Below, in pieces: positions 1,734 through 29,736 of a stretch of 31,706 bases of DNA; the stretch's first letter is position 1; each line of letters starts with the position of its first letter. Source of the DNA: Ascoidea asiatica JCM 7603 (Eukaryota; Fungi; Ascomycota); NCBI GenBank assembly GCA_001600695.1, contig BCKQ01000020.1, positions 181,031 through 212,736 of the forward strand, given 5' to 3'. The notes under the pieces were generated by a model that saw only the letters and a program-made list of their open reading frames with translations, ran no database searches and was not told the origin of the DNA. The translations under genes and the position numbers were made by a program.

Positions 1734-1841
1734 GCGGGAACGACTGCGGGAAGAGCAGCGGAACTATTTTGCGGAAGATCGCAGGGAAGGTTGTGGAAAA
1801 GCAGCTAAAAGAAAGCGGAAGTTTAACCCATTTGGGCGGAA
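1734..1841 (+). promoter_or_regulatory. Cluster of six GCGG(G)AA motifs, candidate Zn2Cys6 transcription-factor sites
   Basis: Motifs at 1734, 1746, 1758, 1771, 1815 and 1836, within a GC-richer intergenic island in a very AT-rich background. Confidence 0.35.
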
Positions 1842-3654: not shown

Positions 3655-4695
3655 ATGAGCTCTTTACTTCAATTCAAAGTAACAAATGAAATGAATGAAG
3701 ATCATAAATACTCTAATAATTTCAAAGATAAGTTTCCAAATACTTATAAAACAACAAATAATGATTCAACTAACTCAAATAATTCAAATGTTCCATTAAA
3801 TTCATTAAATTCATTGCATTCATTAAATTCAAATAATCTATTACATTACTCAAATATTTTACCAAATCCAATTAATAATAATGTTCATCCAATTAATAAT
3901 CCAATTTTAAAGCCAATTTTGAAACCAATATTAAGTTATCCAAATCAAAATATTTATTTAAATAATGATTTAAATAATAATAACTTTAATAATAATAATG
4001 CCAATTTCAATAATAATTATAATAATATTAATATTTATAATAATGAAATTAATAATTATATTTATAAATTAAATTTTAAACATTGTGCAAAAATTGGTAG
4101 ACCTTCAGGTAATGCATCAAAAAGAAGATTAAAACCAAAAACAATAATTGAATTAAAAACAAATAATATTAATAATTCAAAAGCTGAATTTTTTTTATTA
4201 GTTAAATTATTTGATTTTAAATCAAATACAGAAATTACTAAAAAATCATTAATTGGAAATACATGTATTTCTGGAAATTATTCATCAAATTTAGATACTT
4301 ATATTTTTGATTTTTCTCATTTAGGTATAAAATTAGCTGGTTATTATTATTTAAGATTTTATTTATTTATTAATAATGATAATTTAAATCCAAATTTTAT
4401 TTCAATTAAAAAAGTGATAATTTCAAATAATCTTGGAAATAATAATGAATGTAATAATAGTGAAGATTTTGAATCAAAATATTTAGAATCTGGTAAAATT
4501 ACAATTTCAAATTTACCTTCAAATAAAAGTAATAATAATAATAGTAATACATCAATTAAAAGTGAGAAAATTTCAAAGAAACATGATATAGAAAGTCCAA
4601 AAAGTTATAATTCAACACCAAAAAATAGTCCAGTTTTTATTCCAAAATTTAGTAGTCCAGGATATTCTAAAGATATTACTCCAGAATTAGAATAA
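3655..4695 (+). CDS. Divergent velvet-like domain protein, subtype A (copy A1), with Asn-rich N-terminus
   Basis: 346-aa ORF containing YKLNFKHCAKIGRPSGNASKRRLKPKTIIEL...LVKLFDF...SLIGN...YIFDFSHLGIKLAGYYYLRFYL; clearly paralogous to the ORFs ending at 19031 and 27567. Family label comes from manual motif comparison. Confidence 0.7.
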   Translation: MSSLLQFKVTNEMNEDHKYSNNFKDKFPNTYKTTNNDSTNSNNSNVPLNSLNSLHSLNSNNLLHYSNILPNPINNNVHPINNPILKPILKPILSYPNQNIYLNNDLNNNNFNNNNANFNNNYNNINIYNNEINNYIYKLNFKHCAKIGRPSGNASKRRLKPKTIIELKTNNINNSKAEFFLLVKLFDFKSNTEITKKSLIGNTCISGNYSSNLDTYIFDFSHLGIKLAGYYYLRFYLFINNDNLNPNFISIKKVIISNNLGNNNECNNSEDFESKYLESGKITISNLPSNKSNNNNSNTSIKSEKISKKHDIESPKSYNSTPKNSPVFIPKFSSPGYSKDITPELE

Positions 4696-5143
4696 ATAAA
4701 AGTTTTTAATATTTCTCTATTTTTTCTTTTTATTTACTTTCGTTTTTTTCAATGTTTTCTTTCTTTAGATTTTTACTTGTTTACTTTATGACTTTATTAC
4801 TATACTATATGAGATATAAATTCAGGTAAATTATATCAATATAACTTTACAATTAATATATATTTTAATTATTTCACTTCATTCACCCAATATTTATTAT
4901 TCTCAGCATCAAATATAACAATTTTTTGGATAAAAAAAACAGTTCGTAATCGAAAAAAGCCACAAAACTAAAATTAAAAATAATAAAAATAACTAAAAAT
5001 CAAAGGAAAATCAAAGGAAAATCAGAAAAAACAAAGCTGATTTACGAGTTTCCTAATTGGGACGAAAACGGTAATGCGTTACATGCAGCGCAGCTGATTT
5101 AGCGTGAGTTTTGCGTGATTTCAGCCGGCGCAAAAATCTGAAA

Positions 5144-5287
5144 CGGATCTTAAACGGATAATCCACGGATATCGGCTGCTCAAAAGGTGCTTGTTGCTGC
5201 ATTTAGGATTTTACTTCCGGAAGCATAAAAATGCTTGGCACGGAATACACGGAATACACGGAGCTCTTGAATTTTCGGTTCGGAAAT
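5144..5287 (+). promoter_or_regulatory. Cluster of eight CGGA motifs including tandem CACGGAATA repeats (Rgt1-like/Zn-cluster sites)
   Basis: CGGA at 5144, 5155, 5166, 5218, 5241, 5250, 5259 and 5281; some fit CGGANNA. Confidence 0.35.
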
Positions 5288-6149
5288 TAGAGGTTCCAGT
5301 TGAATATTTTTATCTCCGTAAATATTTCCTGTCCATGGAAAAAACTGTATCCGTGGAAAGATGTGGCGAGTGCAAATTGAGAAACTGAAAAAAGGATTAC
5401 AAAAAGAAATATTTCAAAAAGGAATGGAGATAATGGATGAAAATAGTGAACAAAAGAAATGCAAAGATGCAGAAATAAAGAAAGAAACTTAAGATTTATT
5501 GTTATTAGTAAAGCTATGTATTTCCATAATAATAATATTCATTCATGAATAACATATTGGAGTTTGGGTTTGGAAAAGAAGTTGAAGAGTAGATAAATAA
5601 TAAATTCTTAAACAAAACATTAGATATATAGAATAAAAATAGATTACTTTGTTTTTTTGAATAACAATTATAAAGATTATCCCATCGAAGGTCTTTTCTT
5701 TTTATGTGAGACCTTTTAGCAACTTCTTATTCTAAATTTAAAGATAAAACCAAAAAAAATATAAAGAAGTTTTACCTAATCTATTATTGGAAAATATTAT
5801 CTTGACTATATATATTTTAAAACTATATTTAATAAATTTCAGGGTCTTCTTTATATTCTCTTTTTTAATCCTTATTTTCGATGATAGAAATTAGAAAAGA
5901 CTGTTTTTATGAGATTATGTTCAAATTCTCTTAATATTTTATATGAACAACTATCTCACTATTTTTTCAATTGATTTGTATTGGTTTTAATACAATACAT
6001 TTATCTTAAAATTGAATTTTTTTTCAAAATGGTATATCCAAAAATATGTCTTCCCATCTATCTTGTTTTTCAATTTATAAGACTATAAAAGAAAGAGAAA
6101 TTAAACTCAAAAACTTACTTTTTTGTTTTTTATCTGTGATAAATTTTGA

Positions 6150-6531
6150 CAATTTGGAATTTCATATAATGCATATTTCAAATCGGTTACAAGATCTGGT
6201 AGACCACAAGTTACTTCATATAAAAGAATATTTACAAATTTTTTATTTTAGTACTGGTAAATGACTTTCTTATCATTTAACTGGTTCTAAAGCTCAATCT
6301 TGTAAATATATTGAATCTGAAAAAATAATTTCATTTGATTTTTCACATTTAGGTGCTTATGAAAAAGGTATTTATAAGTAATCTTTAGAACAGATAAAAT
6401 CAATGTTAGTTATTCTCTATTATATTCCACCAGTAATTTTAGAATCTGAAGAAATTACAGTTAGTAATAATATTACTAAAAATAATAACAATTATAATAA
6501 TTTAACCTTAATTCAGATAATAAGAAAATAA
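6150..6531 (+). pseudogene. Pseudogene of velvet-like subtype B (copy B1)
   Basis: The frame at 6153 gives FGISYNAYFKSVTRSGRPQVTSYKRIF (compare B2 FGNKYKANFESVPKTGRPQGSSNRRRF). A shifted frame gives FYFSTGK*LSYHLTGSKAQSCKYIESEKIISFDFSHLGAYEKGIYK* and then IPPVILESEEITVSNN. Stops at 6262 and 6379, a frameshift and an internal deletion. Confidence 0.8.
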
Positions 6532-7197
6532 ATTCAGAATTGAATTTGAAAGAATTATCAACAATTTCATCATCAAAGAAAATTAATGTTGGGAATAAAA
6601 AAAAAAAAAGCGAAACTCTTCCTCTTTATGATGATGCAGGTTTTTATGATTAAGGAGATTTATACCACATATTCATCAAAACTCTACATCTAAATTTACA
6701 GTTAAAACTCAGTCAGAAGACATTCTAAATAATGATGTTAAATTTAAGAAAACTCTTCAAAATTCAGTTTTATCTTCTTTTCATCGTCCTTATTTTTTCT
6801 ATTATTTGAAATAAGTTATTAAATTCAATCAAAAAACATAATTATACTGTGTAACAATAATGTTAACTTTAATATTTTTGCTAATCTTAATAATCCTATA
6901 ATTTTATTTCATTACTTTTGATTTAACTAATTCATTTCTTTATATATCTTCTTATAATCTCGAAACCATATCAAAAATAATTAAATTATCAAATAATCAA
7001 ATAATTCGGTAAAAATTATAAAAACTAAAATTTGAAATTCTATTTCGGATAAAAACCACACCATATTAGGGAACCAAAACCACAAAAATATATTGCCGGA
7101 AAATCACGTGAAAAATACATAAATCTCCACGCAATTTGCTTCAGGGAACTGTAATGAGAAGCAGAAGCCTGCATATCGAGTCCCTCCTGCAGGCCCC

Positions 7198-7236
7198 TCC
7201 GGATTATTTACATCCGGATTATTGCTCCGGATTATT
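7198..7236 (+). promoter_or_regulatory. Three direct repeats of TCCGGATTATT (Rgt1-type CGGANNA sites) in the sugar transporter promoter
   Basis: Exact copies at 7198, 7213 and 7226. Further CGGATAA (~7046), CGGAAAA (~7097), an E-box TCACGTGA (~7104) and TATAAA at 7530. Confidence 0.55.
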
Positions 7237-7620
7237 TCCCCAGCTTGAGATCCTTAATTTAATGCTTATTCAAATTCTTATTTTTTTGCTTATTTCTCAT
7301 ATTTTTGATTATTTCTCATGGGAAATCTTAACAAAGTTTTATTTCACATCTGAAAACTTACTCCTCCATTCTCCCATTTTCTTATTCACTTCTTTATTCA
7401 GTTACTCAATTTAGTGCTGGTAATGGTTTCATTTGTTTACTGTTTATGCAACCTAAAAGGACTATGATGTCATCAATAAGGGTTTAGAGACATTACGTAA
7501 TACTGAAAGTTATTACTTTTTTTAATCATTATAAATATCTCCAATATTCCCCATAATATTCTTTATTTTTTCATCCATAAATTAAATTAAATAAAATTAG
7601 AGTAATTACAATATAGAAAA

Positions 7621-9558
7621 ATGTCATCTGCAGATCTTAAAAAAACTGAATCTGAAATTCAGATCAGTAATGATAAAAATTTGTTTTATAATGATAGTAA
7701 TAATAACAATGATAATAATGATAATGATAATGATAATAATATTGATGATATTGATGATATTGATGAAGACAATTTATTATCCCAGTATACTGAACAAGAG
7801 GTCATGCAAATGGGTAGAGAGTATGCTAAATTGCATGGTTTAAATGAAGAATTATTTGGAAAAGCTGCTGCAATTGCAAGAGATCAAAGAAATTATAATT
7901 CTAAAGATTTTTTAAATGATGATGAGAAACAATCCTTATACAATGAAATACATCATAAATGGAAATTGCCTACACATTTATATTATGTTATACTTATGTG
8001 TTCAATGGGTGCTTGTATTCAAGGTATGGATGAATCTGTAATAAATGGTGCAAATTTATTTTATCCTGAATTTTTTAATATTAATTCAGGTTCTGATAGA
8101 GATACTTGGCTAGTTGGTCTTATAAATTCTGCTCCATATCTTTGCTCTTCAGTAATTTCTTGTTGGTTATCTGATTATTTAAATAATAAATTTTCAAGGA
8201 GAGGTACTATTTTTTTAGCCTGCCTCATATCTGCATTAACTTGTATTTGGCAAGCTTTAACAAATAATTGGTGGCATTTATTTATCGCTAGATTTTTTTT
8301 AGGTTTTGGTATTGGTCCAAAAAGTGCAACGATTCCAATATATTCTGCTGAATGTGTACCACATAAAATTAGAGGTGCTTTAGTAATGATGTGGCAAATT
8401 TGGACAGCTTTTGGTATAATGTTAGGTTATGTTTTTTCTCTTATTTTTTATAAAGTTTCCCCCGGTAGTATTAGTAAAGGTTTGAATTGGAGATTAATGC
8501 TTGGTTCTGCTTCATTACCTGCTTTCATAATACTTTCTCAGATTTACTTTTGTCCAGAATCACCAAGATGGCTTATGAATAAAAATCGTCACTACGATGC
8601 TTTCAAATCTTTACAGAGTTTAAGAAATAATGAAATTCAAGCTGCAAGAGATTGTTTTTATCAAAATTTTCTATTAATTCAATCAAATATTGATCCTACT
8701 TTAAATTTAAACTCAAATTCACAGAAAAAAATTTCTTTTTTCAGAAAAGTCATAGATTTATTTAAAATTAGAAGAAATAGAAATGGTGCAATTGCAGCAT
8801 GGATTGTAATGTTTATGCAACAATTTTGTGGTATAAATGTAATTGCATATTATTCTTCTTCAATTTTTATTGAATCTGGTTTTAGTATAAGAGATGCTTT
8901 AATTGCATCTTGGGGTTTTGGTATGCTAAATTTTGTTTTTGCAATTCCTGCTTTTCTTACAATTGATAAATTAGGTCGTCGTACTTTATTATTATTTTCA
9001 TTTCCTTTAATGAGTCTTTTTTTATTAATTACAGGTTTTGCATTTTGGATTGATAATCAAAAAGTTAGAATTGGTATTGTATCTTTAGGTATTTATTTAT
9101 TCACGATTGTTTATTCATCTTCTGAGGGTCCAGTTCCATTTACTTATTCGGCAGAATGTGCTTCTTTATATATGAGGGAATTAACAATGTCATTTGCAAC
9201 AGCAACTTGTTGGTTCTTTAATTTTGTTTTATCTTTAACTTGGCCTTCATTATTAAAAGCATTCAAACCTCAAGGTGCTTTTGGCTGGTATGCTGCTTGG
9301 AATTTAGTCGGGTTCTTCTTAGTTTTATGGTTATTACCTGAAACAAAAGGTTTTACTCTAGAAGAATTAGATAATATTTTTAATGTTCCAATGGGTAAAC
9401 ATGCTGCTTATCAAACTAGATTCACTTTAAATTGGTTCAAAAAAACTATTTTAAAGAAAAAGAATATTGAAAACTTACCACATTTATATCATCTTAATAC
9501 ATTTCAAATCAATAATGAAGATTTGGAACAGAAGCATTCAATTCAACATATAGAGTAA
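7621..9558 (+). CDS. MFS sugar porter family transporter (polyol/myo-inositol/pentose-H+ symporter-like)
   Basis: 645 aa with ~12 hydrophobic segments; motifs QGMDES, PESPRWL, QQFCGINVIAYYS, DKLGRR and PETKG-x-TLEE. Confidence 0.93.
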   Translation: MSSADLKKTESEIQISNDKNLFYNDSNNNNDNNDNDNDNNIDDIDDIDEDNLLSQYTEQEVMQMGREYAKLHGLNEELFGKAAAIARDQRNYNSKDFLNDDEKQSLYNEIHHKWKLPTHLYYVILMCSMGACIQGMDESVINGANLFYPEFFNINSGSDRDTWLVGLINSAPYLCSSVISCWLSDYLNNKFSRRGTIFLACLISALTCIWQALTNNWWHLFIARFFLGFGIGPKSATIPIYSAECVPHKIRGALVMMWQIWTAFGIMLGYVFSLIFYKVSPGSISKGLNWRLMLGSASLPAFIILSQIYFCPESPRWLMNKNRHYDAFKSLQSLRNNEIQAARDCFYQNFLLIQSNIDPTLNLNSNSQKKISFFRKVIDLFKIRRNRNGAIAAWIVMFMQQFCGINVIAYYSSSIFIESGFSIRDALIASWGFGMLNFVFAIPAFLTIDKLGRRTLLLFSFPLMSLFLLITGFAFWIDNQKVRIGIVSLGIYLFTIVYSSSEGPVPFTYSAECASLYMRELTMSFATATCWFFNFVLSLTWPSLLKAFKPQGAFGWYAAWNLVGFFLVLWLLPETKGFTLEELDNIFNVPMGKHAAYQTRFTLNWFKKTILKKKNIENLPHLYHLNTFQINNEDLEQKHSIQHIE

Positions 9559-9711
9559 ATAATAAATGATTTAACAAAATTATTGTATGCAAACCACAGA
9601 AATAAATATAAATCTGCAGCATTTTCCTAATTGGGAAAGTCGCGTAAACCTCCACTTTTTTATTGCTTACGTAATCTCGGGTTTTATTTTCTTTTTTTTT
9701 TCTTAAAAAAG

Positions 9712-9717
9712 ACGCGT
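9712..9717. promoter_or_regulatory. MCB element (ACGCGT) upstream of CMR1
   Basis: ACGCGT ~170 bp before the ATG and a second CGCGT at 9641; this hexamer is rare in such AT-rich DNA. Confidence 0.6.
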
Positions 9718-9883
9718 TTTTTTGCAACAGATTTTTGTATTGAATTTGATTTCATTGAATTGAATAGAATTTGGTTGATATTTCAGATTCGATTATTTAT
9801 GAATTTGAAAATTATTTAAGATATTATTCAGGACACTTTTAAATTATATACCCATCTATTGAATAAGTTTTAAAATAGGAAAA

Positions 9884-11485
9884 ATGTCGCTTTCAAAATT
9901 GGAGAAAATAAGACAGGCAAATATTGCTAGAAATAGGAATTTACTTCGGAAATTGAATATTGATTCAGTTACAAATGATATTGAAACTCATATTTCTAAG
10001 ACAAATTTAAGTAAAGTTGAAACCTCAAAAAATAAAATATCTAAAAAAAGTACAAGAAGAAATAACTCATCAGCTGTAAATAATAATAAATCTTCAATAA
10101 CCCCTCTTAGAAAATCAAAAAGACTTCAAGGCATTAAAATTGAAGAGCCAATAAAAGTTTTACCTTCAGATAGAGAAATTCAAAGTAATTATGAAAAAAG
10201 TAAAATTAATTATGATAAAATCTCAATAAAGGATTTACTAAAACAAAATGATATTGTTGATAAAGATAAAATTGATAATATTATTGATAATATATCTCAA
10301 ACTTTCTCATTAGGTGATTTGTATTATGATATTTTTGATTCAAAATCCAAATCCAAATTTAAATCTAATATCAAAGATATTGAAAATATAAGAAATGAAT
10401 TATCTTCTTTAAATCTTTATAATGAAGAACAAATTAAAGTATTAAATGAAAGAATATCTTATTGTTCTTTTCATCCAACAAATTCAAAAAAAATTGTAAT
10501 TTCTGGTGATATTGAAGGAAATTTATCAATTTTTGAAAATGATAATAACACTTCTTTAAAAATTCATAATAAAAATATGATGAAATTTGATATTTCAAGT
10601 TTTGATTATAAAAGCTTAATAACTTCAAGTTATGATGGTACAATAAAATCAACGAATTTTGATAAATTAACTTCAAATACTTTAATTGATTTTTCTACAA
10701 ATTATATTGGAATTTCTGATTTTAATCTAAATCCAACTAATAATAATATAATTTATTATACAACTTTAGATGGTTTTTTCAATATAATTGATATAAGAGC
10801 TAAACAAAATTCAAATAATCAAATTAATTCTTTTATTAAATTACATGAAAAAAAAATTGGTGGATTTTCAATAAATCCAAATAATCAATATTTAATCTCA
10901 ACTGCAAGTTTAGATAGAACTTTAAAAATTTGGGATTTAAGAAAATTAAATAGTGAAAAAAGACTTGAGAATTTTGACAATTATGTTAGTGTTTTTAACA
11001 ATAGATTAAGTATAAGTTGTTCATCATGGAATAATTCTGGTGATATAGTTTGTAATGGTTATGCAAATACAATAAATATTTTTAAGAATGAGTCTATTTC
11101 AAAATATAATGTTGAAAATATAATAAAGTCGGAATTTGATTCTAATATCAAATTAGAGATCAAACCGGAATTAGAGCCTACCATTTTCCAAGAATCTAAG
11201 GAAATAAAACCCAATTATATAATCAATCATAATTGTAAAACCGGTAAATGGGTAAGTATATTAAAAGCCAGATGGCAAAAAAATCCTAGAGATAATATTG
11301 AAAAATTTTTAATCGGGAATATGAAAAAATATGTAGATATTTATAATAGTGATGGTATTTTATTAGGCCATATTGGGGGTAAAGAAAACAATGTAAGTGC
11401 AATTCCTGCTTGTGCAAATTTCCACCCAACAGAAAATTGGATCGCAGGTGGTTCAGCAACTGGTAAAATTGTCTTATATTCTTGA
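9884..11485 (+). CDS. CMR1: WD40 DNA damage-binding protein Cmr1 (WDR76 orthologue)
   Basis: N-terminal LSKLEKIRQANIARN, LRKSKRLQG, LHEKKIGGFSINP, TASLDRTLKIWDLRK, HNCKTGKWVSILKARW and C-terminal FHPTENWIAGGSATGK. Confidence 0.92.
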   Translation: MSLSKLEKIRQANIARNRNLLRKLNIDSVTNDIETHISKTNLSKVETSKNKISKKSTRRNNSSAVNNNKSSITPLRKSKRLQGIKIEEPIKVLPSDREIQSNYEKSKINYDKISIKDLLKQNDIVDKDKIDNIIDNISQTFSLGDLYYDIFDSKSKSKFKSNIKDIENIRNELSSLNLYNEEQIKVLNERISYCSFHPTNSKKIVISGDIEGNLSIFENDNNTSLKIHNKNMMKFDISSFDYKSLITSSYDGTIKSTNFDKLTSNTLIDFSTNYIGISDFNLNPTNNNIIYYTTLDGFFNIIDIRAKQNSNNQINSFIKLHEKKIGGFSINPNNQYLISTASLDRTLKIWDLRKLNSEKRLENFDNYVSVFNNRLSISCSSWNNSGDIVCNGYANTINIFKNESISKYNVENIIKSEFDSNIKLEIKPELEPTIFQESKEIKPNYIINHNCKTGKWVSILKARWQKNPRDNIEKFLIGNMKKYVDIYNSDGILLGHIGGKENNVSAIPACANFHPTENWIAGGSATGKIVLYS

Positions 11486-11536
11486 TCTAATATTGGTTAA
11501 ATAGACCAACTTATTCCGAATACATTGAAATTTTAT

Positions 11537-16045: not shown

Positions 16046-16279
16046 TATATATGTATATTTTTTTCAATATAATAACAAGAGCTAGTAATTGACACTGCCT
16101 GCTTCAACTGCAAATTGATATTAACTTTTTTTTAAGTCAAATGCAATACAATATACTACAATATGTTTTGGTTATTTTATCAGAAAAAATCGTTTAAATC
16201 AAGAGTGAATTGATCCAAAATAAACCAAAATGAACATTCAAATTGAACCCAGTTTTTAATTGTGAAATTTATTTGAAAA

Positions 16280-16338
16280 ACGCGTTTTTCGAATTGTTTA
16301 AATTATAATTTGTTTTTTTGGTTTACAAAATTACGCGT
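16280..16338. promoter_or_regulatory. Two MCB elements (ACGCGT) in the TOF1 promoter
   Basis: ACGCGT at 16280 and 16333, with an E-box TCACGTGA near 16359; consistent with G1/S MBF control of TOF1. Confidence 0.65.
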
Positions 16339-16555
16339 CGGGATGTTCACAAGTAATATCACGTGATTTTGTTTTTTGTTTTTACCAGGGCCAATTCCAT
16401 TAAATTCAATTCAATTGACTCCGTAAGTTTACTGCATTTTATCTAATTTATTTAATCATTTCTTTACTTGATACTTGATAAAGGGCAAGAAGTGGTTTTA
16501 AATACAGAGCAAAACCTTTGAAAGAACTAAGAAAAATAATTTAATTATTCGTTTT

Positions 16556-17545
16556 CTACCCAATTTTTTCACATTCTTTACTTTGAAGTAGATTTCCTGG
16601 GATATAATCATTGCAGTTTTCGAATTCATTTAGCGTATTGGTATCTGATTTTACACTTAATGCTTTATCTATTTTCATATTATTAATTTTATCACATTCC
16701 TTCTCAAATCCCTCTGTAAATAATGAAGATAGATCTATATTTTCTTCATTCCCAATCAGTTTAATTTCATTGAGAATATCATTAATTGAAAAAAAATTAT
16801 CTGAAGAGCTAATAGAGACCTTGGGCTCTAAAAAATTTCTTTCATCACAATAAAAAGGAAAAAAATCGAGGCCAAAATAATCGTTAAACTCACTAAAAGA
16901 TAAATCTGTTTTCTTACTGGATGAAGACATTGAATCATTTAAAGATTTTGATATGTCATTTATATATATTTCTTTATTTGAGTTATTGTTATGAGTTTCA
17001 TTAGATGTTGAAATTTCTTCAATTTTTCCTTTTTTTGAATTTGTTAAAGACAGCAATAAAGATCTAGATTTTGAAATTTTTGAATTTTCTCTAGAATTGG
17101 AATTTTTAACAATAATCTCGTCAGATTTTAAAACAATTGGTGGAAATAATGAAGGGCAATTAAAATTTATTTTTGTTTTCTTAAAATTCATATTTTTATT
17201 CATTAAACTTAAGGAGAAAATCAATCTATAGTTACCTTTTTCGGAAGCACCTAAATCTGAAAAATTAAAATTTATTGAGTTCTTAGCTTCTTGATAGCTA
17301 CCAAGCTGAATGGCAGTTCCATTTAAATTATTTGATCTTACTCCAGTTACATAATCAAAAAGTTCTGCTTTACATGAAATGTCGAATGTAAAATCATTAA
17401 AATCCGATAAACTTTTGATAGTAGAAACCTTTAAAATTATAATAGCTTTGGGCTGGAATCTTCTCCTATTTGAGGAGCCTTGTGGTCTTCCAGTTTTTGG
17501 GACTGACTCAAAATTTGCTTTATATTTATTCCCAAAATTGTCCAT
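16556..17545 (-). CDS. Divergent velvet-like domain protein, subtype B (copy B2): N-terminal domain plus acidic C-terminal tail
   Basis: MDNFGNKYKANFESVPKTGRPQGSSNRRRFQPKAII...AELFDYVTG...NLNG...FNFSDLGASEKGNYRLIFSL...LKSDEIIV. ATG 17545 chosen by alignment to paralogues; the alternative is ATG 17587. Confidence 0.7.
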   Translation of the reverse strand: MDNFGNKYKANFESVPKTGRPQGSSNRRRFQPKAIIILKVSTIKSLSDFNDFTFDISCKAELFDYVTGVRSNNLNGTAIQLGSYQEAKNSINFNFSDLGASEKGNYRLIFSLSLMNKNMNFKKTKINFNCPSLFPPIVLKSDEIIVKNSNSRENSKISKSRSLLLSLTNSKKGKIEEISTSNETHNNNSNKEIYINDISKSLNDSMSSSSKKTDLSFSEFNDYFGLDFFPFYCDERNFLEPKVSISSSDNFFSINDILNEIKLIGNEENIDLSSLFTEGFEKECDKINNMKIDKALSVKSDTNTLNEFENCNDYIPGNLLQSKECEKIG

Positions 17546-19030: not shown

Positions 19031-20113
19031 TCATTTAAGTAATTTATAAATATTTTCCTTTTTTTTCTCCTTTCCTTTGTTGTTGTTTTTCTTGTGATTA
19101 CTGTTATCTCTATTATTACCAATATTGTCATTATTACCATTATTGCAGTTATCATCATAGTTGGATTTATTATAAGGAGCATTGGATACGGTGATTTTCC
19201 CAGTTTTAATGAAATTCAGATTATTATTATTAATACTCAATGATTTTAAATCAGGATTTAAATTATTATTATTTGATAATAGAAAAAATTTCAAATAATA
19301 AATTCCTGGTAGTCTTATACCTAAATGTGTGAAATCAAAAAGATAGGAATTATAAATGGAGGTATAAATTCCATAAATACATGGATTTCCAATCAACGAT
19401 CTTCTTGTTAAATCAATATTAAGATGATAATCAAATAATTTAACTAAAACAAAATATTCATTATTATCTGAGATTTCATTAGTTTCTAATTCTATTATTG
19501 TTCTAGGTTTCAATCTTCTTTTAGATGAATTTCCTGAGGGTCTTCCAGAATCTGCAACTTCTTTGAATTCTAAATTATAATACAGTCCTTTATATATTTC
19601 TTTAGTCTTTTCATTACATATCTTATTTCTCTTTTTGTCAGATGAATTTCCACTGGTTTCACCACTAGTTTTATCACTGGTTTTATCACTGGTTTTATCT
19701 TTTACTTGGCTTTTATCTTTATTGTAATGATAGTTCAAGTTTTTTATAGGAGGCAAGTCGACAGAAGTATTATAAGAGGGCGTTGTAGATCCTGAATTGT
19801 CTTTGAAATTGCTCAGTTTATATTGAATAATTTTATCATACTTATTATCTCCTTGATATTCTTGTTGATCTAATTGATCTCCTTTATCTAGTTTGCGTTC
19901 ATTACCCCTTTGATTTTCATTATCTGTGGATATTTTTTTCATAAAATGAAAACTATTTTTATTGTATTGATTTGGATTAATATACTTATTGTTCTTATTA
20001 TGTTGAATATGATCTGATGTTAAATTTGAATTTATAATAGAATCAGATTCTATTTCTAATTTTAAATTTGGACTTGAATTAAAACTATTATTTGATCCAA
20101 AGGAAGAAAGCAT
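19031..20113 (-). CDS. Divergent velvet-like domain protein, subtype A (copy A2)
   Basis: YNLEFKEVADSGRPSGNSSKRRLKPRTIIELETN...LVKLFDY...SLIGN...LFDFTHLGIRLPGIYYLKFFL. ATG 20113 has the same context (aaatttaacATG) as copy A3. Confidence 0.72.
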   Translation of the reverse strand: MLSSFGSNNSFNSSPNLKLEIESDSIINSNLTSDHIQHNKNNKYINPNQYNKNSFHFMKKISTDNENQRGNERKLDKGDQLDQQEYQGDNKYDKIIQYKLSNFKDNSGSTTPSYNTSVDLPPIKNLNYHYNKDKSQVKDKTSDKTSDKTSGETSGNSSDKKRNKICNEKTKEIYKGLYYNLEFKEVADSGRPSGNSSKRRLKPRTIIELETNEISDNNEYFVLVKLFDYHLNIDLTRRSLIGNPCIYGIYTSIYNSYLFDFTHLGIRLPGIYYLKFFLLSNNNNLNPDLKSLSINNNNLNFIKTGKITVSNAPYNKSNYDDNCNNGNNDNIGNNRDNSNHKKNNNKGKEKKKENIYKLLK

Positions 20114-20973
20114 GTTAAATTTGATGATTATTTGTATATTGCTTATCAAAGCACTTTATTAAAGCATATTGAGAAACCTCAAGACTTTATACTATAATAA
20201 AGCAGATCCGATATTATTGAAGTTTGTATCAGAAATTCAATGTTAAGTTATAAATATACACGAATTTTTTTATATTTTCAAATATTTCAACAAAATGATC
20301 TTTATTAGTTTTATAAAAGCAAAAGACGATTTAAAATGAATTAAAAAATCAAAAAGATTATAAATCAATTTCAAATAAGGATGAAGTGGCAATTAAAATG
20401 AAAAAAAAGCTTTCTCTAGATAATTCTTTTTCATTTAAACTTACAAATCCAATAAAATATAAAAAATAACAGAAAATGATAACCAAAATCCAAAAATAAT
20501 TCATTTTTTAAGATACACTGAAATTCGGCAAGTTCAAGCTTCATCTGCAAGATGACAAAGCACAAAAAACAATGACCATTTCCGGCAAAGATGGCGCAGA
20601 ACCGAACAATTCAAGTCAGAAGGCTGAAACGTAGAGCCACGTCACCAGCCTCTATTTCGGGGTTTGATGGCAAAAACAAGATTCAGGACATAAAATATAT
20701 GGACGTAAATGTAAAATACCTGGGTCACACCGCCCTAAACTAGCCTGGTTCAGCTTCGTGACTGGCAGATAATTTTTAGTGTTACCAATTTTAGTCTCTG
20801 GTGAAGTTTCATAAAGGGATTCTAATATTCTTTAATCATATTTCCATTTTTTTAATTCCCTTTTCTTATTTCCAATATTCTATCTTTAAATACTGGTATA
20901 ATGTTCAATTCAAAACATATTGTATGTTCGGCTACAGTTGTAATACTAAATAATTGTAATTCAGATTTCATCC

Positions 20974-22167
20974 ATGTCCTTATCAACTTCAAGGAATACT
21001 TGTAAGTCAAAATCAACCTCAAATCCAAATGAAATTCAATGTCAAAATCAAAACGAATATAAATTGGTCACTCCAGATCATATAAATGAATCAAATTTGA
21101 ATTCTAACTTCAAATACATTTCATATAAACATAGTAGTCATAACAATAATAGTCATATAAATAGGAGTTCAAATAATAAAAACTTCAATAATAATAAAAA
21201 TAAAAATGAGAAAGCTAGTGATAAATATGAATCAGACTCAGATTCAGACTCAGATTCAAACTCAAATCTGAGCTCAACTTCCTCTTCCAATTCAAGTTTA
21301 AACTCTTTATCACAAAATTATCCTTTATCAGTCAATTCAGCAAAAAAGCAATATTTCTATGATTTAAAAATAATTCAATCTTCAACGAAAGGTAGGCAAT
21401 CTGGTTCTTCTTCAAAAAGATTACTTAGTCCTTCAACAATTTTACAATTATTCACAAATGATATACCAAACGAATTACCAAATAGTTTACCAAATGATTT
21501 AATAACAAATTCAAAAAATGTGAATGATAATATAATTAATAAAAAAAATTTTAATTATATTTTAATTGCAACTATTGAAAATGATAATTCTCATAATTTA
21601 AAAGGTGATAAAATTATTATGGGTAATAATTTTATTGATAAATATAAATTTGTATTTGAATTTAATAATTTAGCTATTCAGAATTCTGGTGAATTTAAAT
21701 TAAAATTCAATTTACTAAAAATCTCTTTAAACAGTTTTCAATCTTCTTTTATTAAATCAATTCATTCAAATACTATAAATATTTTAACTACACGTACTTA
21801 TTATATTCATGATACTCAAATCACCGAAGATATTCAAAATACTCAAAATATTCAAGATATTCAGAGTATCAAAAAAAATCATCAAATTAAACATATCCAA
21901 GATAATATTCATAAAAAAACAAAATATAAAAATATAAAACCATTGAAATCTAATTTTAAAAACTTAAAAGCTTATTCTCTGACAAATTTCAAAAACAATA
22001 AATGCAAAATTACAAAAATTAAATCAAATAATTTATTATCTAGAAAACTTAATGGGAAATTCAATGAAAAAGAATACAAATCATCATTAAGTCAGGAATC
22101 TTCAAATTTATTAAACTCTATCTTTACTGAGCCTATACTAAAAAGTTTCTCCGAATATCTAACCTAA
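20974..22167 (+). CDS. Velvet-like domain protein, subtype D (the copy closest to the canonical VosA/VelB pattern)
   Basis: YDLKIIQSSTKGRQSGSSSKRLLSPSTILQL...YILIATI...NLKG...FVFEFNNLAIQNSGEFKLKFNL...FIKSIHSNTINI. Confidence 0.72.
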   Translation: MSLSTSRNTCKSKSTSNPNEIQCQNQNEYKLVTPDHINESNLNSNFKYISYKHSSHNNNSHINRSSNNKNFNNNKNKNEKASDKYESDSDSDSDSNSNLSSTSSSNSSLNSLSQNYPLSVNSAKKQYFYDLKIIQSSTKGRQSGSSSKRLLSPSTILQLFTNDIPNELPNSLPNDLITNSKNVNDNIINKKNFNYILIATIENDNSHNLKGDKIIMGNNFIDKYKFVFEFNNLAIQNSGEFKLKFNLLKISLNSFQSSFIKSIHSNTINILTTRTYYIHDTQITEDIQNTQNIQDIQSIKKNHQIKHIQDNIHKKTKYKNIKPLKSNFKNLKAYSLTNFKNNKCKITKIKSNNLLSRKLNGKFNEKEYKSSLSQESSNLLNSIFTEPILKSFSEYLT

Positions 22168-22507
22168 CATAATCACTCCTTATATTATTATTATTACTTG
22201 AATTTTCAAATTCAGCTTTATTTTGTAAAATTTTTAACGTTAACTATTCCAATCTACCAATATTATACTATCTTTTTCTCTTTTTCTATTTGTTATATAG
22301 TTTTTTTTCATTATTAAGACATTTCATTTTTTATTTTCATTATCATTATCATCATTGAAAAACATTTATTTATTATATTTTACTACATATTAATTGTATG
22401 AAGTAATCCAATACCCAAATAGATAATCAAATTTCAATATAAATCAATTTTCAAAATTTTTTTCTCTTTTCTTCTCGTTACTTTTATGTTCCACTCAACT
22501 TTTTAAA

Positions 22508-23416
22508 TTAATCTTCCTTTAAATAATGTTTTGCCCAATTTGGTAAAACAAAAGAAGCTTCATGAAAATCACTATTATAAAATCTGAATAACTTATCTTC
22601 ATCCATTTTGCTTAATTTTCTCAATGGTTTTTTTAAATTTAAATTTTTATCTTTTGAACATATTAATAAACCAATTTGACCACTTGTATAAGTTGGAGTT
22701 GAACAATAGCAATATTCAACATTTGGAAAAACTTTATGAGCAATTTTTTTAAGATTTTTAATAAATTTAAAATTTAACCAATTATTTTCGCTTGCCATTG
22801 AAATTACAATACCATTATCATTTAAAGCATTATATAATAATGTAAAATAATTTTGTTGAAAAAAAGCTTCTGCTGGACCTTCAGGATCTGAAGAATCGGT
22901 TATAATTACATCAAATTTATCATTTTGTTTTAAATTTGAAGATTCTTTTAAATATTTAAAACCATCATCTAAAATCACTTGAACTTTTTCATTATTAAAA
23001 CCTTTAGCCATATTTGGTAAATATTTTTTACTTAATTTAATAACTAATTCATCAATTTCAACTAAAATTGCCTTTTCAACCAGAGAATGTTTAACAATTT
23101 CTCTTAATACACCACCATCACCACCACCAATTACTAAAACATTTTTTGGATTCGGATGAGAAAATAAAGGAATATGAGAAATTAATTCTTGATAAGAAAA
23201 TTCATCTCTTTCAGTAACATTAATAATACCATCTAAAACTAAAACATTACCATAATTAGTACTTTCAAATACTAAAACATCTTGAAATTCAGTTATTTCA
23301 TGATATAAGATTTTTTTAACTTTCAATTTAAATGCTTGACCAGGAAATGAAGATTCAGATTTCTCAATAAACCAACCATCTTGAATTGAAGGATGACTCA
23401 ATATTTCACTAACCAT
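22508..23416 (-). CDS. SPE3: Spermidine synthase (aminopropyltransferase)
   Basis: [70 protein letters not shown]. The paralogue SPE4 cannot be excluded, since FPGQAF and GPAEAFF also resemble it. Confidence 0.8.
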
Positions 23417-23648
23417 TTTTGAAGATCATACACAATATAATTATTAGTCTATTTTTTTATAAAAAATATACCTTTGTGAAACTGAATTTTTAGAAATAAA
23501 TAAAAAAACAAAAACAAAAAAACAAAATCTTTTTGAGATTAAATACTGTAACAGATACAGTACTATTGATTTTTCATTTTCATATTTGAATTTTATTTTT
23601 TTTCTATTCATCCACAAATTGATGAACTTTAATTTGAAAATGAAAAAA

Positions 23649-23660
23649 TGAAAAATTTCA
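23649..23660. promoter_or_regulatory. RRPE-like element TGAAAAATTTCA upstream of the spermidine synthase gene
   Basis: Matches the TGAAAAWTTT growth-related motif about 235 bp upstream of the ATG; weak because of the AT-rich background. Confidence 0.3.
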
Positions 23661-24203
23661 TCCGAATCTGCAAAAAAACAGCAGGAGATGGCAAGACACG
23701 GCCCAAAGCTGTTTTACCCAGCGGAGAGCCGCACAAACAAGTTGGTAAGGTTTGACTAAGCATGTTTGTGCATAATTGAACATATTTTTGGTTGGAAATA
23801 AATAATGTCACGTTGATTTCTCGGAATGCATTTGAATTGGGCAATTTACTTCTTGGTTAATTTATTCTCATAAAAAAATGTATTTATAAGTTTAATAACA
23901 GGTTCTATTGATTTCATTATAAAACTCTTTTCTCATTTTTTGGATAAGAGTAATGATAATGAAATCTATTATGAAATTAATTGTATTTAGTCCTTTCTAA
24001 AAAAGTTGGCATAAATGGTATAAAAAAACGTTCTTAGATTTATATATCAGTTATTAAAGGAATCCGGAAAAGAAAAATTAGAAAAAAACAAAAAAATGTT
24101 GTGACTAAAATTGAGAAATTATATATGTAAATTTGGGTATATGTATTTGAAGTAAATATGGGCTATTTTATAAGACTAAAGAACGTGGATTCAGCTTCCT
24201 GTT

Positions 24204-25112
24204 CTAGTTCTTGTTCTTGTTTTTTTTTTCATTTAAATTGATAAATTTATTAGGTGCTTTCTCCATAAAATTTTCCATTTTAAGGTGTGGATCAATAGAA
24301 ATATCATTTAAGTCTGATACTACTTCATATTGCAAATTTGGAGAACATGTAATAAAAGTTTTATCTTGATTTACTAATTGTTCAACATTATATGGATCCT
24401 CATTGGAAGTTTCTTTTAAAACAGATTCTAGATCATAAAACTGAAGGTTTGAATTAAATTCAGACATGAAGTTATTTATTTTAAAATCAAAGGTATTATC
24501 GGGTGTTAATTGAGAAGATAAAGAACCTTCAGAAATTATTATATTTTCAAAAGAATCAATTTTGGGCTTCGATACTTTATAAGATGATTGATTATTAGAA
24601 TCTGATTCTGACGATGATATTTTCCTTTTCTTTGTGTTTTTAACAGATTTATTAACAGAATTATTAACAGCAATTTTTCCTGAATTTAAGACTAATAATG
24701 GAACCAAAGTGGTATATTTGAAATTAATTTCGCTTTCTTTGAAATTTTGATTTTTTTCAACTAATACTGATGAAAAAACTAATCTATAAACACCGGTTTT
24801 TGAAGCTCCTAAATCGGAAAAATCAAAAAGAAATTCATTTTCAGATTCAATATATTGACCAATTCTAATAGCTGAACCATTCAAATTTTTTGATCTACAT
24901 CCCGTCTCATGATCAAATAATTCAGCTCTAAAAAGAATATCAAATGGAAATTTGATTGAATCAGATAAGTTTTTAATACAAGAAACATTTAGACTAATGA
25001 TCGTTTTTGGTGTAAGTCTTCTTTTATTAGAAGAGCCCTGAGGTCTTCCTTCAGCAGCAACTGTCAAAAATTTGGCTTTATAACTGTTACCAATTTTATC
25101 CTTACTCTGCAT
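24204..25112 (-). CDS. Divergent velvet-like domain protein, subtype B (copy B3)
   Basis: MQSKDKIGNSYKAKFLTVAAEGRPQGSSNKRRLTPKTII...AELFDHETGCRSKNLNG...FDFSDLGASKTGVYRLVFS...LNSGKIAV; first ATG at 25112. Confidence 0.7.
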   Translation of the reverse strand: MQSKDKIGNSYKAKFLTVAAEGRPQGSSNKRRLTPKTIISLNVSCIKNLSDSIKFPFDILFRAELFDHETGCRSKNLNGSAIRIGQYIESENEFLFDFSDLGASKTGVYRLVFSSVLVEKNQNFKESEINFKYTTLVPLLVLNSGKIAVNNSVNKSVKNTKKRKISSSESDSNNQSSYKVSKPKIDSFENIIISEGSLSSQLTPDNTFDFKINNFMSEFNSNLQFYDLESVLKETSNEDPYNVEQLVNQDKTFITCSPNLQYEVVSDLNDISIDPHLKMENFMEKAPNKFINLNEKKNKNKN

Positions 25113-26021
25113 AACTAAATCATTCACTAAATTTAAGGATTTATTGAGAATTAAATTGAATTTCAAAAATTAGAAGCCGATTTAGATAATATCAGAACAT
25201 GCCTAAACTAAATAAAAAAATAAATTGCAAAAACTTTTAAAGGATTATCTTCTTGAAGATTATCTTATCTTTATATCTAATTGCAGATAACTTTTAAACA
25301 CTACGTTAGTCATTTAATATTTTTTGAGTGTTGAGTTAAATACCCTTTTTTGAGTATAGATCTGTCCAGAAATAAGGAACCAGGTGAATTCATTTCTAGT
25401 TTGCAGAGTACTAGGATCTAATACTTAGAGTTGGCTGTGTTGGAATGGCCACGATCAATTAATAACAATAACAATAACAATAGACTCGTATTGCACTCTG
25501 TTTTAAATCGTATCAAACCTAAGGTATCCTGTTAGCAAAGGGGAAAGGTACAATAAGCTTATCCTTATGAGACAGTCTGCATATTTATACCGAAAGTTCC
25601 AACCTTACTGGCATTCATGCTGCAAAGGGCAGAGGACAATGCAAAACCTTAAAATGGCTTGTCACGTTTAATAACCGACTCGGTGAGTGCGGTACCGGTC
25701 TGTCTGTCCAGCTTCTTCAAATTCAAGCTATTTTTGCAATGGTTTTGTTTTTAGAAGATGTGTTTATACAAACTGTGTGTATTTGAAAAATATGACAAGA
25801 CAAAAAATAAACTAAAATTTGGGTAATAAAAGAAGAAAAGTTTAGAGAATATGTGTAAAGAGGAAAGAATCAAAAGCAACTACAAATATATATATACTTG
25901 AAGAGCTTAGCTTTTAAAAGTTTGCTTATCAATAAGTGGTATTATACTGTGTGCTTAGAAAACAGTAAATGCAGTTTTTATTTCATAAACCATCTGGAGC
26001 AATTGACTTTTTTTTTATATT

Positions 26022-26861
26022 TCATTTTCTATTATTGTCAGAATAATTGTCATTATTGAAAAAACTGTTAAATTCATCTAGTTTAAGATTTAATTTCTCG
26101 TTTTGACCCAAAATAAAAGTTTCTGATAACAGTGAATTTTCATTACATCCAGAAGTATTGTTATTATCTAAATCTATATTTTCAAATCCTGAAATATCAA
26201 AATAACAACTTTGTAGATTGGATTCGATAGTTTTTGGATAACATAATTGATTCTCAATTTGAACTAACGATTCTTGAGATTGTTCTTGAGTCTCTAAATT
26301 ATTAATTAATCATTCTGAATGGTCAAACAAATTATTCGTTAAAGGTAAAACTATGAATGCTTTTAATTCTTGAGAATCATATGAAATTTGATTTATATCA
26401 GATAAAATTTTATTTTCTTCAAATTTTTTCCAATTTGACTTCATTTTAATACCTCCAGAAATCAAATGATTTGAAAAATCATCAGTAAACTTTGGAATTT
26501 GTTTAATTGAAAATAACATATTATATTCACCACGTTTTCCAATAGCTAAAGAATTGAAAATAAACCTTATACAAGATTTTTCTGAACAATATTTACCTTT
26601 TACCATATCATTTCCTTTCAATTCATCACTTCTTTCAAGGATTCCACCTCGGTAACAAGCTAATTCTGCATGCATAAAGAAATAAAAATCTGAATTATTA
26701 AAATCTTCTTCACTTCGTATATATTTATTTTTTGCAATAATTGAAAATGGTGTGGGTTTTAACCTTCTTACTTCTTTATTAATGCTAACCTTTTCATATT
26801 TTGGTACACTTTCAAAACTTAACTGGAATAACCCAAATTTGAGTTCAGAAATATTTTGCAT
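26022..26861 (-). CDS. Highly diverged velvet-like copy (subtype C) with an in-frame TGA at 26310-26312 (truncated allele, readthrough or error)
   Basis: FQLSFESVPK...VRRLKP...FFMHAEL...ELKG...GKY...FIFNSLAIGKRGEYNMLFSI...LISGGI. After the TGA the same frame stays open for 95 codons to a TGA at 26022-26024. Confidence 0.6.
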
Positions 26862-27566
26862 TAAAAAAAGAATAAGCAAAAAGAATTGTTTATGTTTATT
26901 CAAAAAAGATATAAATTAAATAGATTTTTTTTTTATTGACTTAGAGGCTTTTATATATTTTTTTTTTCAATCTACAGTTTATCAAACTATTAAAATTGAA
27001 TAACAAGAAAACAAAAATAAACAAATTGTTTTCTTAAGTGAAAGATTCTTTTGATTTTATAATTATTTTAAAACCCAAATCCATGTTTTTGGGCATTTTT
27101 TATTATTACATTTTTCTCTTTATGAGACTATCAGTAATTTAATTAGGACCCTTTCTTATTTCTAATAAATCACAATTAATCAGAGTCAGAGTTTTTTCCA
27201 AATAAAATTCACTCTTTTCTCAATTATTTACGAAGTATAATATTGACTAAAAATTTAAAGAATTGTTCAATGATAAAGAAGAATGATAATTTGAAGATTT
27301 TAAATCCAAATAAAAAATCAAGAAATATAAGAAATTCATCAAAAAGCAAAACTTCCATACAAAATGGAGTAATAATTTAATTGAATTGAAAAAAAAATAA
27401 TTGAAATAAATAAAATGAATTATGATATACTGTATATAAAATGAAATAATTTTTGTCACCTAGACTTACCTTTCAACTTCCACCACCAATAAGAAAAAAA
27501 AAAAATTTAAAAAAAAGAAAGATCAGAAAACAAAAACTGAATATTGAAAAACATATCAAAAATACA

Positions 27567-28610
27567 TTAATTGTTGTAAACTGAAAAAAAATTAGTTGTA
27601 TAGGTATAATATATATATATGAGTTTGAAAAAAATTAATGATTTGAGTAATTTATAAATATTATTCTTTTTCTTTTCTTTTTTTTTATTATTGTCATTAT
27701 TGTCATTATTGTCATTATTGTCATTATTGTCATTATTGCAGTTATCATCATAGTTGGTTTTATTATAAGGAGCACTGGATACGGTGATTTTTCCAGTTTT
27801 AATGAAATTCAGATTATTATTATTATTAATACTTAATGATTTTAAATCAGGATTTAAATTATTATTATTGAATAATAGAAAGAATTTCAAATAATAAATT
27901 CCTGGTAGTCTTATACCTAAATGAGTGAAATCAAAAAGATAGGAATTATAAATGGATGTATAAATTCCATAAATACATGGATTTCCAATCAACGATCTTC
28001 TTGTTAAATCAATATTAAGATGATAATCAAATAATTTAACTAAAACAAAATATTCATTATTATCTGAGATTTCATTAGTTTCTAATTCTATTATTGTTCT
28101 AGGTTTCAATCTTTTTTTAGATGAATTTCCTGAGGGTCTTCCAGAATCTGCAACTTCTTTAAATTCCAAAATATAATACAGTTCATTACATCTCTTATTT
28201 CTCTTTTTGTTTGATAAATTTCCACTGATTTTATCACTTGTTTTATCTTTTACTTGGTTTTTATCTTTATTGTAATGATAATTCAAGTTTTTTATAGGAG
28301 GCAAGTCGATAGAAGTATTATAAGAGGGTGTAGATGATCCTGAATTGTCTTTGAAATTGCTCAGTTTATATTGAATAATTTTATCATACTTATTATCTCC
28401 TTGATATTCTTGTTGATCTAATTGATCTCCTTTATCTAGTTTGCGTTCATTACCCCTTTGATTTTCATTATCTGAAAATATTCCTTTCTGAGAATAGAAA
28501 CTATTTTTATTATGTTTATTAAACTGAGAGTGATAGGAGGGTAAATTTGAATTTGAATTTGAACTTGAACTTAAACTAAAGCTATTGTTGGAATTTAAAG
28601 ATGAAAACAT
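27567..28610 (-). CDS. Divergent velvet-like domain protein, subtype A (copy A3), near-identical to A2 over most of its length
   Basis: 347 aa; nearly identical to A2 from DNENQRG through YDDNCNN. Confidence 0.72.
   Translation of the reverse strand: MFSSLNSNNSFSLSSSSNSNSNLPSYHSQFNKHNKNSFYSQKGIFSDNENQRGNERKLDKGDQLDQQEYQGDNKYDKIIQYKLSNFKDNSGSSTPSYNTSIDLPPIKNLNYHYNKDKNQVKDKTSDKISGNLSNKKRNKRCNELYYILEFKEVADSGRPSGNSSKKRLKPRTIIELETNEISDNNEYFVLVKLFDYHLNIDLTRRSLIGNPCIYGIYTSIYNSYLFDFTHLGIRLPGIYYLKFFLLFNNNNLNPDLKSLSINNNNNLNFIKTGKITVSSAPYNKTNYDDNCNNDNNDNNDNNDNNDNNKKKEKKKNNIYKLLKSLIFFKLIYIYYTYTTNFFSVYNN
27688..27737. repeat. 9-bp tandem repeat (TTATTGTCA) x~5 encoding DNN units in A3
   Basis: Direct tandem copies visible; the corresponding tract in A2 is degenerate. 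Confidence 0.7.
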
Positions 28611-29168
28611 GTTAAATTTTCTTACTTTATTTGTATGTTTCTTATCAAAAGATTTTTCACTAATAGTTGTTTCATGAAAGTGTTTTTATTGATGAACATT
28701 TCTTGTGATTATATAGGAATATGAAGAAAATGCAATGAATAAACAAGAATGGAAATTCAGTTGGTTAAAAAAAAAGAGAAAATTTAAAAAAGAGTAAGAT
28801 AAAAATGGTATAGATTATTTTTAACTTACATCATCTAAGAGAAAAAACTATAGATAATAATCAAAATAAAAAATTATGGTTCCTTCAATTTGGCTGAGTA
28901 TTACAGATTAGAACAAAAAAAAAATGATTTGCGGTAAAGAAAAACATTTTTTCATAAGTAATTTATCAGGAAATTGTTTACAAAAAAGAATTTATTCCAA
29001 TTTCAAATCTTCATGATCTGAATTATTATTGTGATTCTTCTGGGGATTGAATTTTTGGTTCAGCATTACGTTGGATTTCAAATAATGAACTTTCGTTATT
29101 ACTTTCGTTATTTTTTGAGTCTTGAGCATTGATTCTGTTGGAGGATGATTCTGTTGTTGAATTTCCTA

Positions 29169-29736
29169 CTAACTTCTTACATATTTTTTATCAATTACTT
29201 TAATTTTTTTCATATTCTCATTACCTTTATTACTCTTATTTTTACTCTTTAAATCAGTATTGCTAATAATAATTTCACCAGATTTTAGAGTTATTTTCGA
29301 AGGTAATTTAAAAAAACTAACATTTATTTCATCTTCTTTAAAATTTAAATTCTTTTCCATTAATTTTAAAGTAAATATTAATTTATAATTACCTTTATAA
29401 GAAACACCTAAATCTGAAAAATCAAAACAAATTAAATTTTTTTTTTTTAAATATTCACCACATTTAACTTTTAAACCATTTAAATTATTTGATCTTTTTC
29501 CAGTTTCAAATTCAAAAAGTTCTGAAAAAACTAAGAAATTCAAATGGATAATCATTAAAATCTGATATTGAATTAATATTTAAAACTTTTAAATATATTA
29601 TTGTTTTTGGTTTAAGTCTTCTTTTATTTGAATTACCTTTAGGTCTACCAGATTTTGAAATTGATTCAAAATAGAATTTAGATAATTCATTGATTAGATT
29701 ATAATTATCTTTGGTTTGACAATATGAAATTTTCAT
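29169..29736 (-). CDS. Velvet-like subtype B copy (B4) split by a +1 frameshift at about 29535 (programmed frameshift, pseudogene or assembly error)
   Basis: ORF 29512..29736 carries FYFESISKSGRPKGNSNKRRLKPKTII...YPFEFL. The overlapping ORF 29169..29555 carries VFSELFEFETGKRSNNLNG...FDFSDLGVSYKGNYKLIF. Joined, they align without gaps to B2/B3. Confidence 0.7.

Follow-up and report, generated by a model that had tools for sequence, protein, structure and literature searches.

A clustered array of velvet-derived genes with an NF-kB-like fold in the genome of Ascoidea asiatica

The stretch analysed here (the window) comprises 31,706 nucleotides of Ascoidea asiatica JCM 7603 (contig BCKQ01000020.1, below C20, positions 181,031 to 212,736 of the forward strand) and carries nine copies of a gene derived from the velvet family. 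An earlier note, made from the sequence alone, had reported at least nine such copies, namely six uninterrupted open reading frames (ORFs), one copy with an in-frame stop (26861), one frameshifted copy (29736) and one pseudogene (6150), and all of them were found in place. Each of the six open ORFs (A, C, D, E, F and H) runs from an ATG to a stop codon. The count can be extended, as a tenth intact copy of 271 amino acids (aa) starts about 1.6 kb beyond the end of the window and runs back to about 800 bases beyond it, and two further short copies lie 6 and 40 kb ahead of the window on the same contig. With the tenth copy counted as part of the array there are ten neighbouring copies, seven with open frames and three (B, G and I) broken. 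The features are, in window coordinates:

3655..4695, plus strand: copy A, 346 aa, alpha subfamily, intact; N-terminal region rich in Asn, with the velvet-derived domain at about aa 134-285
6162..6650, plus strand: copy B, pseudogene of the beta subfamily; coding sequence split among three frames, about two strands deleted, one internal stop
9884..11485, plus strand: CMR1, interspersed housekeeping gene, with best matches in Ascoidea rubescens (42%), then Saccharomycopsis crataegensis
16556..17545, minus strand: copy C, 329 aa, intact, beta subfamily; N-terminal domain, basic segment and acidic aromatic tail (net -14)
19031..20113, minus strand: copy D, 360 aa, intact, alpha subfamily; structural model matching VeA at Z 15.0; putative conversion tract with copy H
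20974..22167, plus strand: copy E, 397 aa, intact, the least derived copy; orthologous to the gene that lies convergent with SPE3 in A. rubescens
22508..23416, minus strand: SPE3, spermidine synthase; synteny anchor common to this array and that of A. rubescens (75% identity)
24204..25112, minus strand: copy F, 302 aa, intact, beta subfamily; structural model available, acidic tail (net -8)
26022..26861, minus strand: copy G, on a long branch close to beta; DNA-binding triad without its first arginine, in-frame TGA at 26312-26310
27567..28610, minus strand: copy H, 347 aa, intact, alpha subfamily; recent partner of copy D
29169..29736, minus strand: copy I, beta subfamily; one-base frame change within the domain, former tail broken
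29529..29535, minus strand: in-frame heptamer CTT AGT T at the frame change of copy I

The copies matched one another in tblastn searches at E-values of 1e-47 to 1e-4. Between them lie a sugar transporter gene, CMR1, a TOF1-like gene of 1502 aa, which we take to be TOF1, and SPE3, so that the tandem arrangement is interrupted. The gene order suggested a repeated two-gene cassette of one alpha and one beta copy; no non-coding similarity was found to back such a cassette, and it was rejected.

Pfam Velvet was the only family that recurred among the window copies in hmmscan searches, with E-values between 2e-5 and 0.3 (0.0024 for copy A), all failing the cut-off. Copy E scored 24.9 bits against PF11754, for which the cut-off is 25, and passed only when its pieces were summed; the other copies scored 11 to 18 bits or gave no match. 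A profile built from the window copies alone and compared with solved structures matched only VeA (E 4.7e-7), VosA and VelB, and addition of relatives to the profile brought these matches to 2.7e-16, 4e-11 and 2e-9, respectively. An AlphaFold model of copy F, based on an alignment of 18 derived sequences that included no canonical velvet, reached a predicted local distance difference test score (pLDDT) of 88.7. Among 48,161 chains its best match was VeA (Z 14.6, root mean square deviation 3.7, 137 aligned residues), followed by VelB (Z 13.5) and NF-kB p52 (Z 9.5), and Foldseek agreed on velvet (E 6e-9). The model of copy D gave VeA (Z 15.0), VosA (14.3) and NF-kB p65 (10.8). Both models form a seven-stranded, Rel-N-like beta-sandwich that fits the solved velvet domains used for comparison (PDB 9I2S, 4N6Q and 4N6R). 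In phylogenetic trees, for which copy I was joined with an X at its break, all 46 derived domains formed one clade (support 99/92; 99/89 without long branches) that joins the canonical velvets via Saccharomycopsis members. Support for a grouping of this clade with VeA was 100/96 in the full tree and 83/61 without long branches, a grouping with VelB was not rejected in the approximately unbiased (AU) test (p 0.11), and the nearest gene of the same genome is VosA-like; on these trees the parent class leans towards the VeA/VosA side. Profile, structure and tree together support a descent of the array proteins from velvet genes with an NF-kB-like fold. The velvet match on which the earlier note had made this very proposal depend was found, with VeA ranking best in structure and profile searches alike.

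Three motifs define a velvet domain (PMC10845976), and they have fared very differently in the array. Motif 2 (F-x-F-x-DL...G-x-Y/F-x-L-x-F) is kept, with invariant F, L, G and F columns. QQP and DPPP of motif 1 are gone, and only the proline at VelB position 85 remains, in line with the remodelling of both elements noted earlier. The basic residues persist: the position of VelB R71 is kept in eight of the nine scored copies, position 80 is basic in eight and position 81 in all nine. These positions read R/K/R or R/R/R in A, C, D, E, F, I and the tenth copy, and R/K/K in H, so that the basic loop described in the note is indeed retained in nearly all copies. Among 15 alanine mutants of VelB, those of R71, R80 and R81 had the most severe defects (PMC13389560); the same set covered Q65, P67 and P85-87 (PMC13389560), which are the positions remodelled in the array copies. 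The loop corresponding to loop A carries DNA binding in VosA (PMC3876986), and loop A is the best conserved stretch among the array members, with 73% pairwise identity as against 40% elsewhere; between the subfamilies the values are 68% and 34%.

Motif 3, that is, the FPG of loop B and the C-terminal helix, is present in most canonical sequences of the alignment and is missing from all window copies and from the entire derived clade. Copy E and most relatives have a trace of it ending in two aromatic residues, of which the other array members have none. The note had described a velvet-like motif order; this stood for motif 2 and the basic loop, whereas the loss of motif 3, the largest remodelling, had been overlooked. 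Because this defining motif fails, the array proteins are classed as velvet-derived and not as canonical velvets. The loss need not abolish either DNA binding or dimerisation, since VosA with the loop B substitution K160A still binds DNA and VosA residues 161-190 were not seen in the crystal of the VosA-VelB heterodimer (PMC3876986); by analogy with VosA, motif 3 looks dispensable for both activities.

Outside the domain the subfamilies differ. Among the beta copies, C, F and the tenth have the domain first, followed by a basic segment and an acidic aromatic tail (net -14, -8 and -13, respectively), a make-up that is also that of yeast activation domains. In the alpha copies the N-terminus is of low complexity, and an acidic tail is lacking.

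Queried with the domain, word-index protein searches gave two matches or none, and the relatives were obtained by an exhaustive profile search. The derived type was found in A. rubescens (13 proteins in this search and at least 14 in all, most of them labelled 'Velvet domain-containing' in UniProt), in S. crataegensis and in other assemblies. The A. rubescens count takes one protein per 50% cluster, with 10 kb examined on each side of the genes, so that further copies are possible. The family, which had been thought lineage-specific, is therefore not confined to this genome; what stands is that, as found, it is common to A. rubescens and Saccharomycopsis. Other Ascomycota, too, have short velvet-like proteins that score weakly against Pfam. 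Next to its SPE3 gene, A. rubescens has three consecutive derived genes, of which the last is convergent with SPE3 exactly as copy E is. The two form an orthologous pair (98/94), and from this and the syntenic array it follows that an array at SPE3 predates the split of the two species. The alpha copies A, D and H (97/91) and the beta copies C, F, I and the tenth copy (99/98) each group together, and a single clade of alpha, beta and E was rejected (AU p 0.016); judged by these trees, the array has two origins, with copy E standing apart from the other copies. No A. rubescens protein among the relatives from the exhaustive search fell inside alpha or beta, and growth to ten copies was not found in that species within the 10 kb on each side; alpha and beta either grew after the species split or were lost in A. 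rubescens. Around CMR1, no velvet gene was found within 10 kb in A. rubescens or S. crataegensis. On A. rubescens scaffold KV454497.1, which is syntenic with the array contig, two short derived velvet genes lie near ELO and SIS1, and A. asiatica has one short derived copy 8 kb from ELO.

The DNA of copies D and H is 96.5% identical over codons 64-310 and 67% and 82% identical outside this tract. The synonymous difference is 0.10 inside and about 0.5 outside (p 5e-9), and this much lower value inside the tract points to gene conversion. Within the domain, the proportion of nonsynonymous differences (pN) was 0.011 and that of synonymous differences (pS) 0.089 (Fisher p 0.0006), with pN below pS in every segment, which shows purifying selection on D and H. 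Each of these two genes has three CTG codons at matching positions, two of them at the domain edges; CUG is read randomly as Leu or Ser in A. asiatica (PMC6041473), so that the D and H proteins would be mixtures. Across the array the domains are conserved and the flanks are not. Copy B is dead. In copy G the TGA follows 183 aa and is itself followed by 95 open, acidic codons with coding-like base composition; this post-stop frame gave no significant match to the paralog tails, and the stop is probably a young nonsense change. Purifying selection, a conversion tract and decaying copies are together evidence of birth-and-death evolution. Copying driven by a transposon was considered and rejected, as no terminal repeats were found and common flanks are limited to D and H.

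The genome (20.31 Mb, 71 contigs) contains ten full-length canonical velvet genes and one degraded VeA-like gene, in addition to at least 21 derived loci and one weak candidate, or about 32 velvet-type loci in all; three of the derived loci (C5:356 kb, C17:134 kb and C10:210 kb) were counted from scores alone. Many of the derived proteins, 143-209 aa long, consist of the domain alone and have no tail. Moulds have four velvet genes and baker's yeast has none. Most budding yeasts have lost velvets, and A. asiatica, a filamentous yeast, has about eight times the mould number, some two thirds of it in a form that Pfam largely misses. Four of the canonical genes lie within 140 kb on contig C4 (419-560 kb), and the six VelB-type genes of the genome form a clade of their own, a second expansion. 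On contig C3 (1384-1390 kb) there is a linked pair of derived genes with a Lys-rich loop and one-to-one neighbouring orthologues in A. rubescens (ODV63272.1 and ODV63274.1), an old conserved pair.

In our reading, to which we assign a probability of roughly 0.6, the array proteins are transcription factors of velvet descent that bind specific DNA sequences; motif 3 disappeared from them in an ancestor of Ascoidea and Saccharomycopsis, and their genes have multiplied through local duplication, gene conversion and loss. By analogy with VosA and VelB, loop A would enter the major groove of DNA, and since it is nearly the same in both subfamilies, the sites recognised by alpha and beta copies are probably similar. 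Dimerisation through the beta-sandwich has probably been preserved, either among array proteins or with the ten canonical velvets. Activation would come from the beta members C and F and the tenth copy, by way of their acidic tails; the alpha copies A, D and H and the short copies, having no such tail, would act as partners or competitors. The combination of a shared recognition loop with different tails and upstream regions would suit a set of regulators whose target sites are alike and whose timing or sign of action differs. Velvets usually control hyphal growth, spore formation and dormancy, and stage-specific control of one of these would be the likely output; a developmental role is suggested solely because other velvets have one. 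Several observations weigh against the proposal. Copy G has lost the R71 equivalent, three of the ten copies are broken, and the reading of the acidic tails is one of composition only. The basic loop could serve nuclear import alone. Finally, the ratio of nonsynonymous to synonymous rates (dN/dS) for the deeper pairs is 0.2-1.0 by the NG86 method, which is unreliable at 25% GC.

Among the alternatives, an unlikely one is that the stripped domains are inhibitory partners that sequester canonical velvets or occupy their sites without activating. It would account for the many tail-less bare domains of 143-209 aa, both models contain the dimer-face strands, and ten canonical velvets are available to be titrated; the DNA-binding loop, however, is needless for pure sequestration and is nevertheless the best conserved part, and acidic tails are kept in C, F and the tenth copy. 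That the copies are mostly redundant duplicates drifting to loss, with importance limited to E and perhaps to a single copy each of alpha and beta, we think quite unlikely: seven open frames persist at 40-60% mutual identity, pN is below pS in every D/H segment and the domains are conserved while the flanks vary, even though B, G and I are broken, E alone has a clear A. rubescens orthologue and the contig holds other local duplications.

Families engaged in genetic conflict typically show fast turnover, clustering, gene conversion and long branches. All of these are seen in the array, and its contig also carries remnants of long terminal repeat (LTR) elements. A role in genetic conflict or defence, with DNA-binding proteins chasing transposons or sets of meiotic drivers and suppressors, is nonetheless improbable. 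An arms race predicts a diversifying recognition loop, whereas here the loop is the most conserved part; no pair had a dN/dS above 1 (NG86, unreliable for deep pairs at this GC content), and neither Pfam nor structure searches found a toxin-like or mobile-element domain. This possibility, which the earlier note had also raised, thus found no support. It is highly improbable that the proteins are not velvet-derived at all and represent a convergent immunoglobulin-like fold or a transposon protein. The failure of every window copy to exceed the Pfam Velvet cut-off in hmmscan would fit such an origin; against it, velvets were the top match by profile, in two structure searches and in the Atlas, the Saccharomycopsis members provide a sequence bridge to the canonical velvets, and the copies are not bordered by terminal repeats or common flanks.

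Copy I changes frame by one base at 29535-29529, at the in-frame CTT AGT T. This heptamer is the EST3 +1 site of Saccharomyces cerevisiae, about 15% efficient there (PMC12661321). In favour of a programmed +1 shift, reading in the +1 frame falls exactly into register with the paralogs, the conserved residues downstream are intact, and tRNA-Leu(UAG) is kept in the species. On the other hand, CTT is already present at the equivalent codon of copy F, and an extra T in a run of T would look alike; the tail of copy I is broken by further frame changes and stops; the heptamer occurs in the window at the frequency expected by chance. Moreover, the EST3 (TPP1 family) match of this genome (contig C7, 277328-277810) is a single open frame, so that A. 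asiatica lacks the Saccharomyces frameshift in EST3. On balance, programmed frameshifting in copy I appears fairly unlikely. It forms part of a wider scheme, possible if rather unlikely as a whole, in which Ascoideales would have made a new transcription factor subfamily by reducing velvet to a Rel-N-like domain alone, its recognition loop altered, a combinatorial code of dimers among about 30 velvet-type proteins of this genome would govern hyphal and spore development, and copy I would be expressed by an EST3-type +1 frameshift outside Saccharomycetaceae.

Some features of the surroundings may be added. Upstream of copy A, window positions 1300-2700 form a stretch of about 1.4 kb without a long ORF and with about 35% GC, compared with 25% for the genome. 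It gave no Rfam, tRNA or repeat match (the window as a whole gave no tRNA or Rfam match) and is possibly regulatory. A comparable GC-rich non-coding stretch (46-52%) lies about 4.5 kb upstream of the SPE3 array in A. rubescens, and no DNA similarity was found between the two. Window positions 1-312 and the sequence upstream (C20, about 167.4-181.3 kb) contain an inverted duplication of 1.75 kb with 97% identity, through which a membrane-protein gene is present twice; in A. rubescens this gene occurs once, 4.6 kb from SPE3. At the right end of the array (31224-31706) there is a class II aldolase-family gene with an inverted paralog (91% identity) about 15 kb downstream. The two LTR-retrotransposon remnants, which are 96% alike, flank the region at about 152.6-158.8 kb and at 231-234 kb of C20.

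In summary, the array is a real, undescribed variant of a known family. Velvets were already known in some Saccharomycotina, and "velvets in a budding yeast" are not new, since an expansion in the same order has been published for Saccharomycopsis fibuligera and ten canonical velvets are present here; what is left as new is the array and the clade without motif 3. A literature search, with subscription papers largely outside its scope, found no description of Ascoidea velvets, of a clade lacking motif 3 or of a clustered array, and the accessible part of the supplementary text of PMC10845976 does not name Ascoidea. The derived proteins are a natural test of the parts of the velvet domain, having kept three essential basic residues and dropped the helix that distinguishes it from Rel-N. 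With its conserved anchor, diverged subfamilies, converted pair and pseudogenes, the array is an aged series of duplicates in which the birth and loss of regulators can be studied. Its genes are candidate regulators of true hyphae and of spores in Ascoideales, and it offers a test case for the origin of new developmental regulators rather than a new mechanism.

Compared with known systems, the multiplication of velvet-domain genes by duplication resembles that in S. fibuligera, for which 12 velvet genes were reported (PMC5106798), and in Mucoromycotina with more than ten (PMC10845976); in the accessible parts of these sources the counts are made at the Pfam level and neither clustering nor motif loss is mentioned, whereas about 32 loci are present here. 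The nearest relatives, A. rubescens ODV63655.1, ODV58961.1 (a GRP-type gene, alone on another scaffold), ODV59698.1 and ODV59699.1 and S. crataegensis GMM36194.1 and GMM37872.1, belong to the same derived clade and have the same motif 3 loss; these entries carry automatic labels and are not described genes. Copy I resembles the EST3-type +1 shift in its in-frame CUU AGU U and in the homologous +1 frame in paralog register, and differs from it in that the species' own EST3 is uninterrupted and the tail of copy I is also broken. With the velvet family proper (VeA, VelB, VelC and VosA) the array proteins share the beta-sandwich, the strand order, motif 2 and the basic residues of loop A. They differ in the absence of motif 3, the replacement of QQP and DPPP, and a mostly lysine residue for Arg80 with an extra basic residue after it, and in being ten linked copies where the family is one of four unlinked genes. 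With NF-kB Rel-N and Runt the array proteins have the fold in common (Z 8-11), at scores far below those to velvets and with no sequence match in Pfam or PDB. Unlike Rel/NF-kB, they have no Rel-C (IPT) dimerisation domain and consist of a single domain followed by low-complexity tails. NF-kB Rel-N is likewise without the velvet C-terminal helix (PMC3876986), and it is in this respect that the derived proteins approach a bare Rel-N-like domain.

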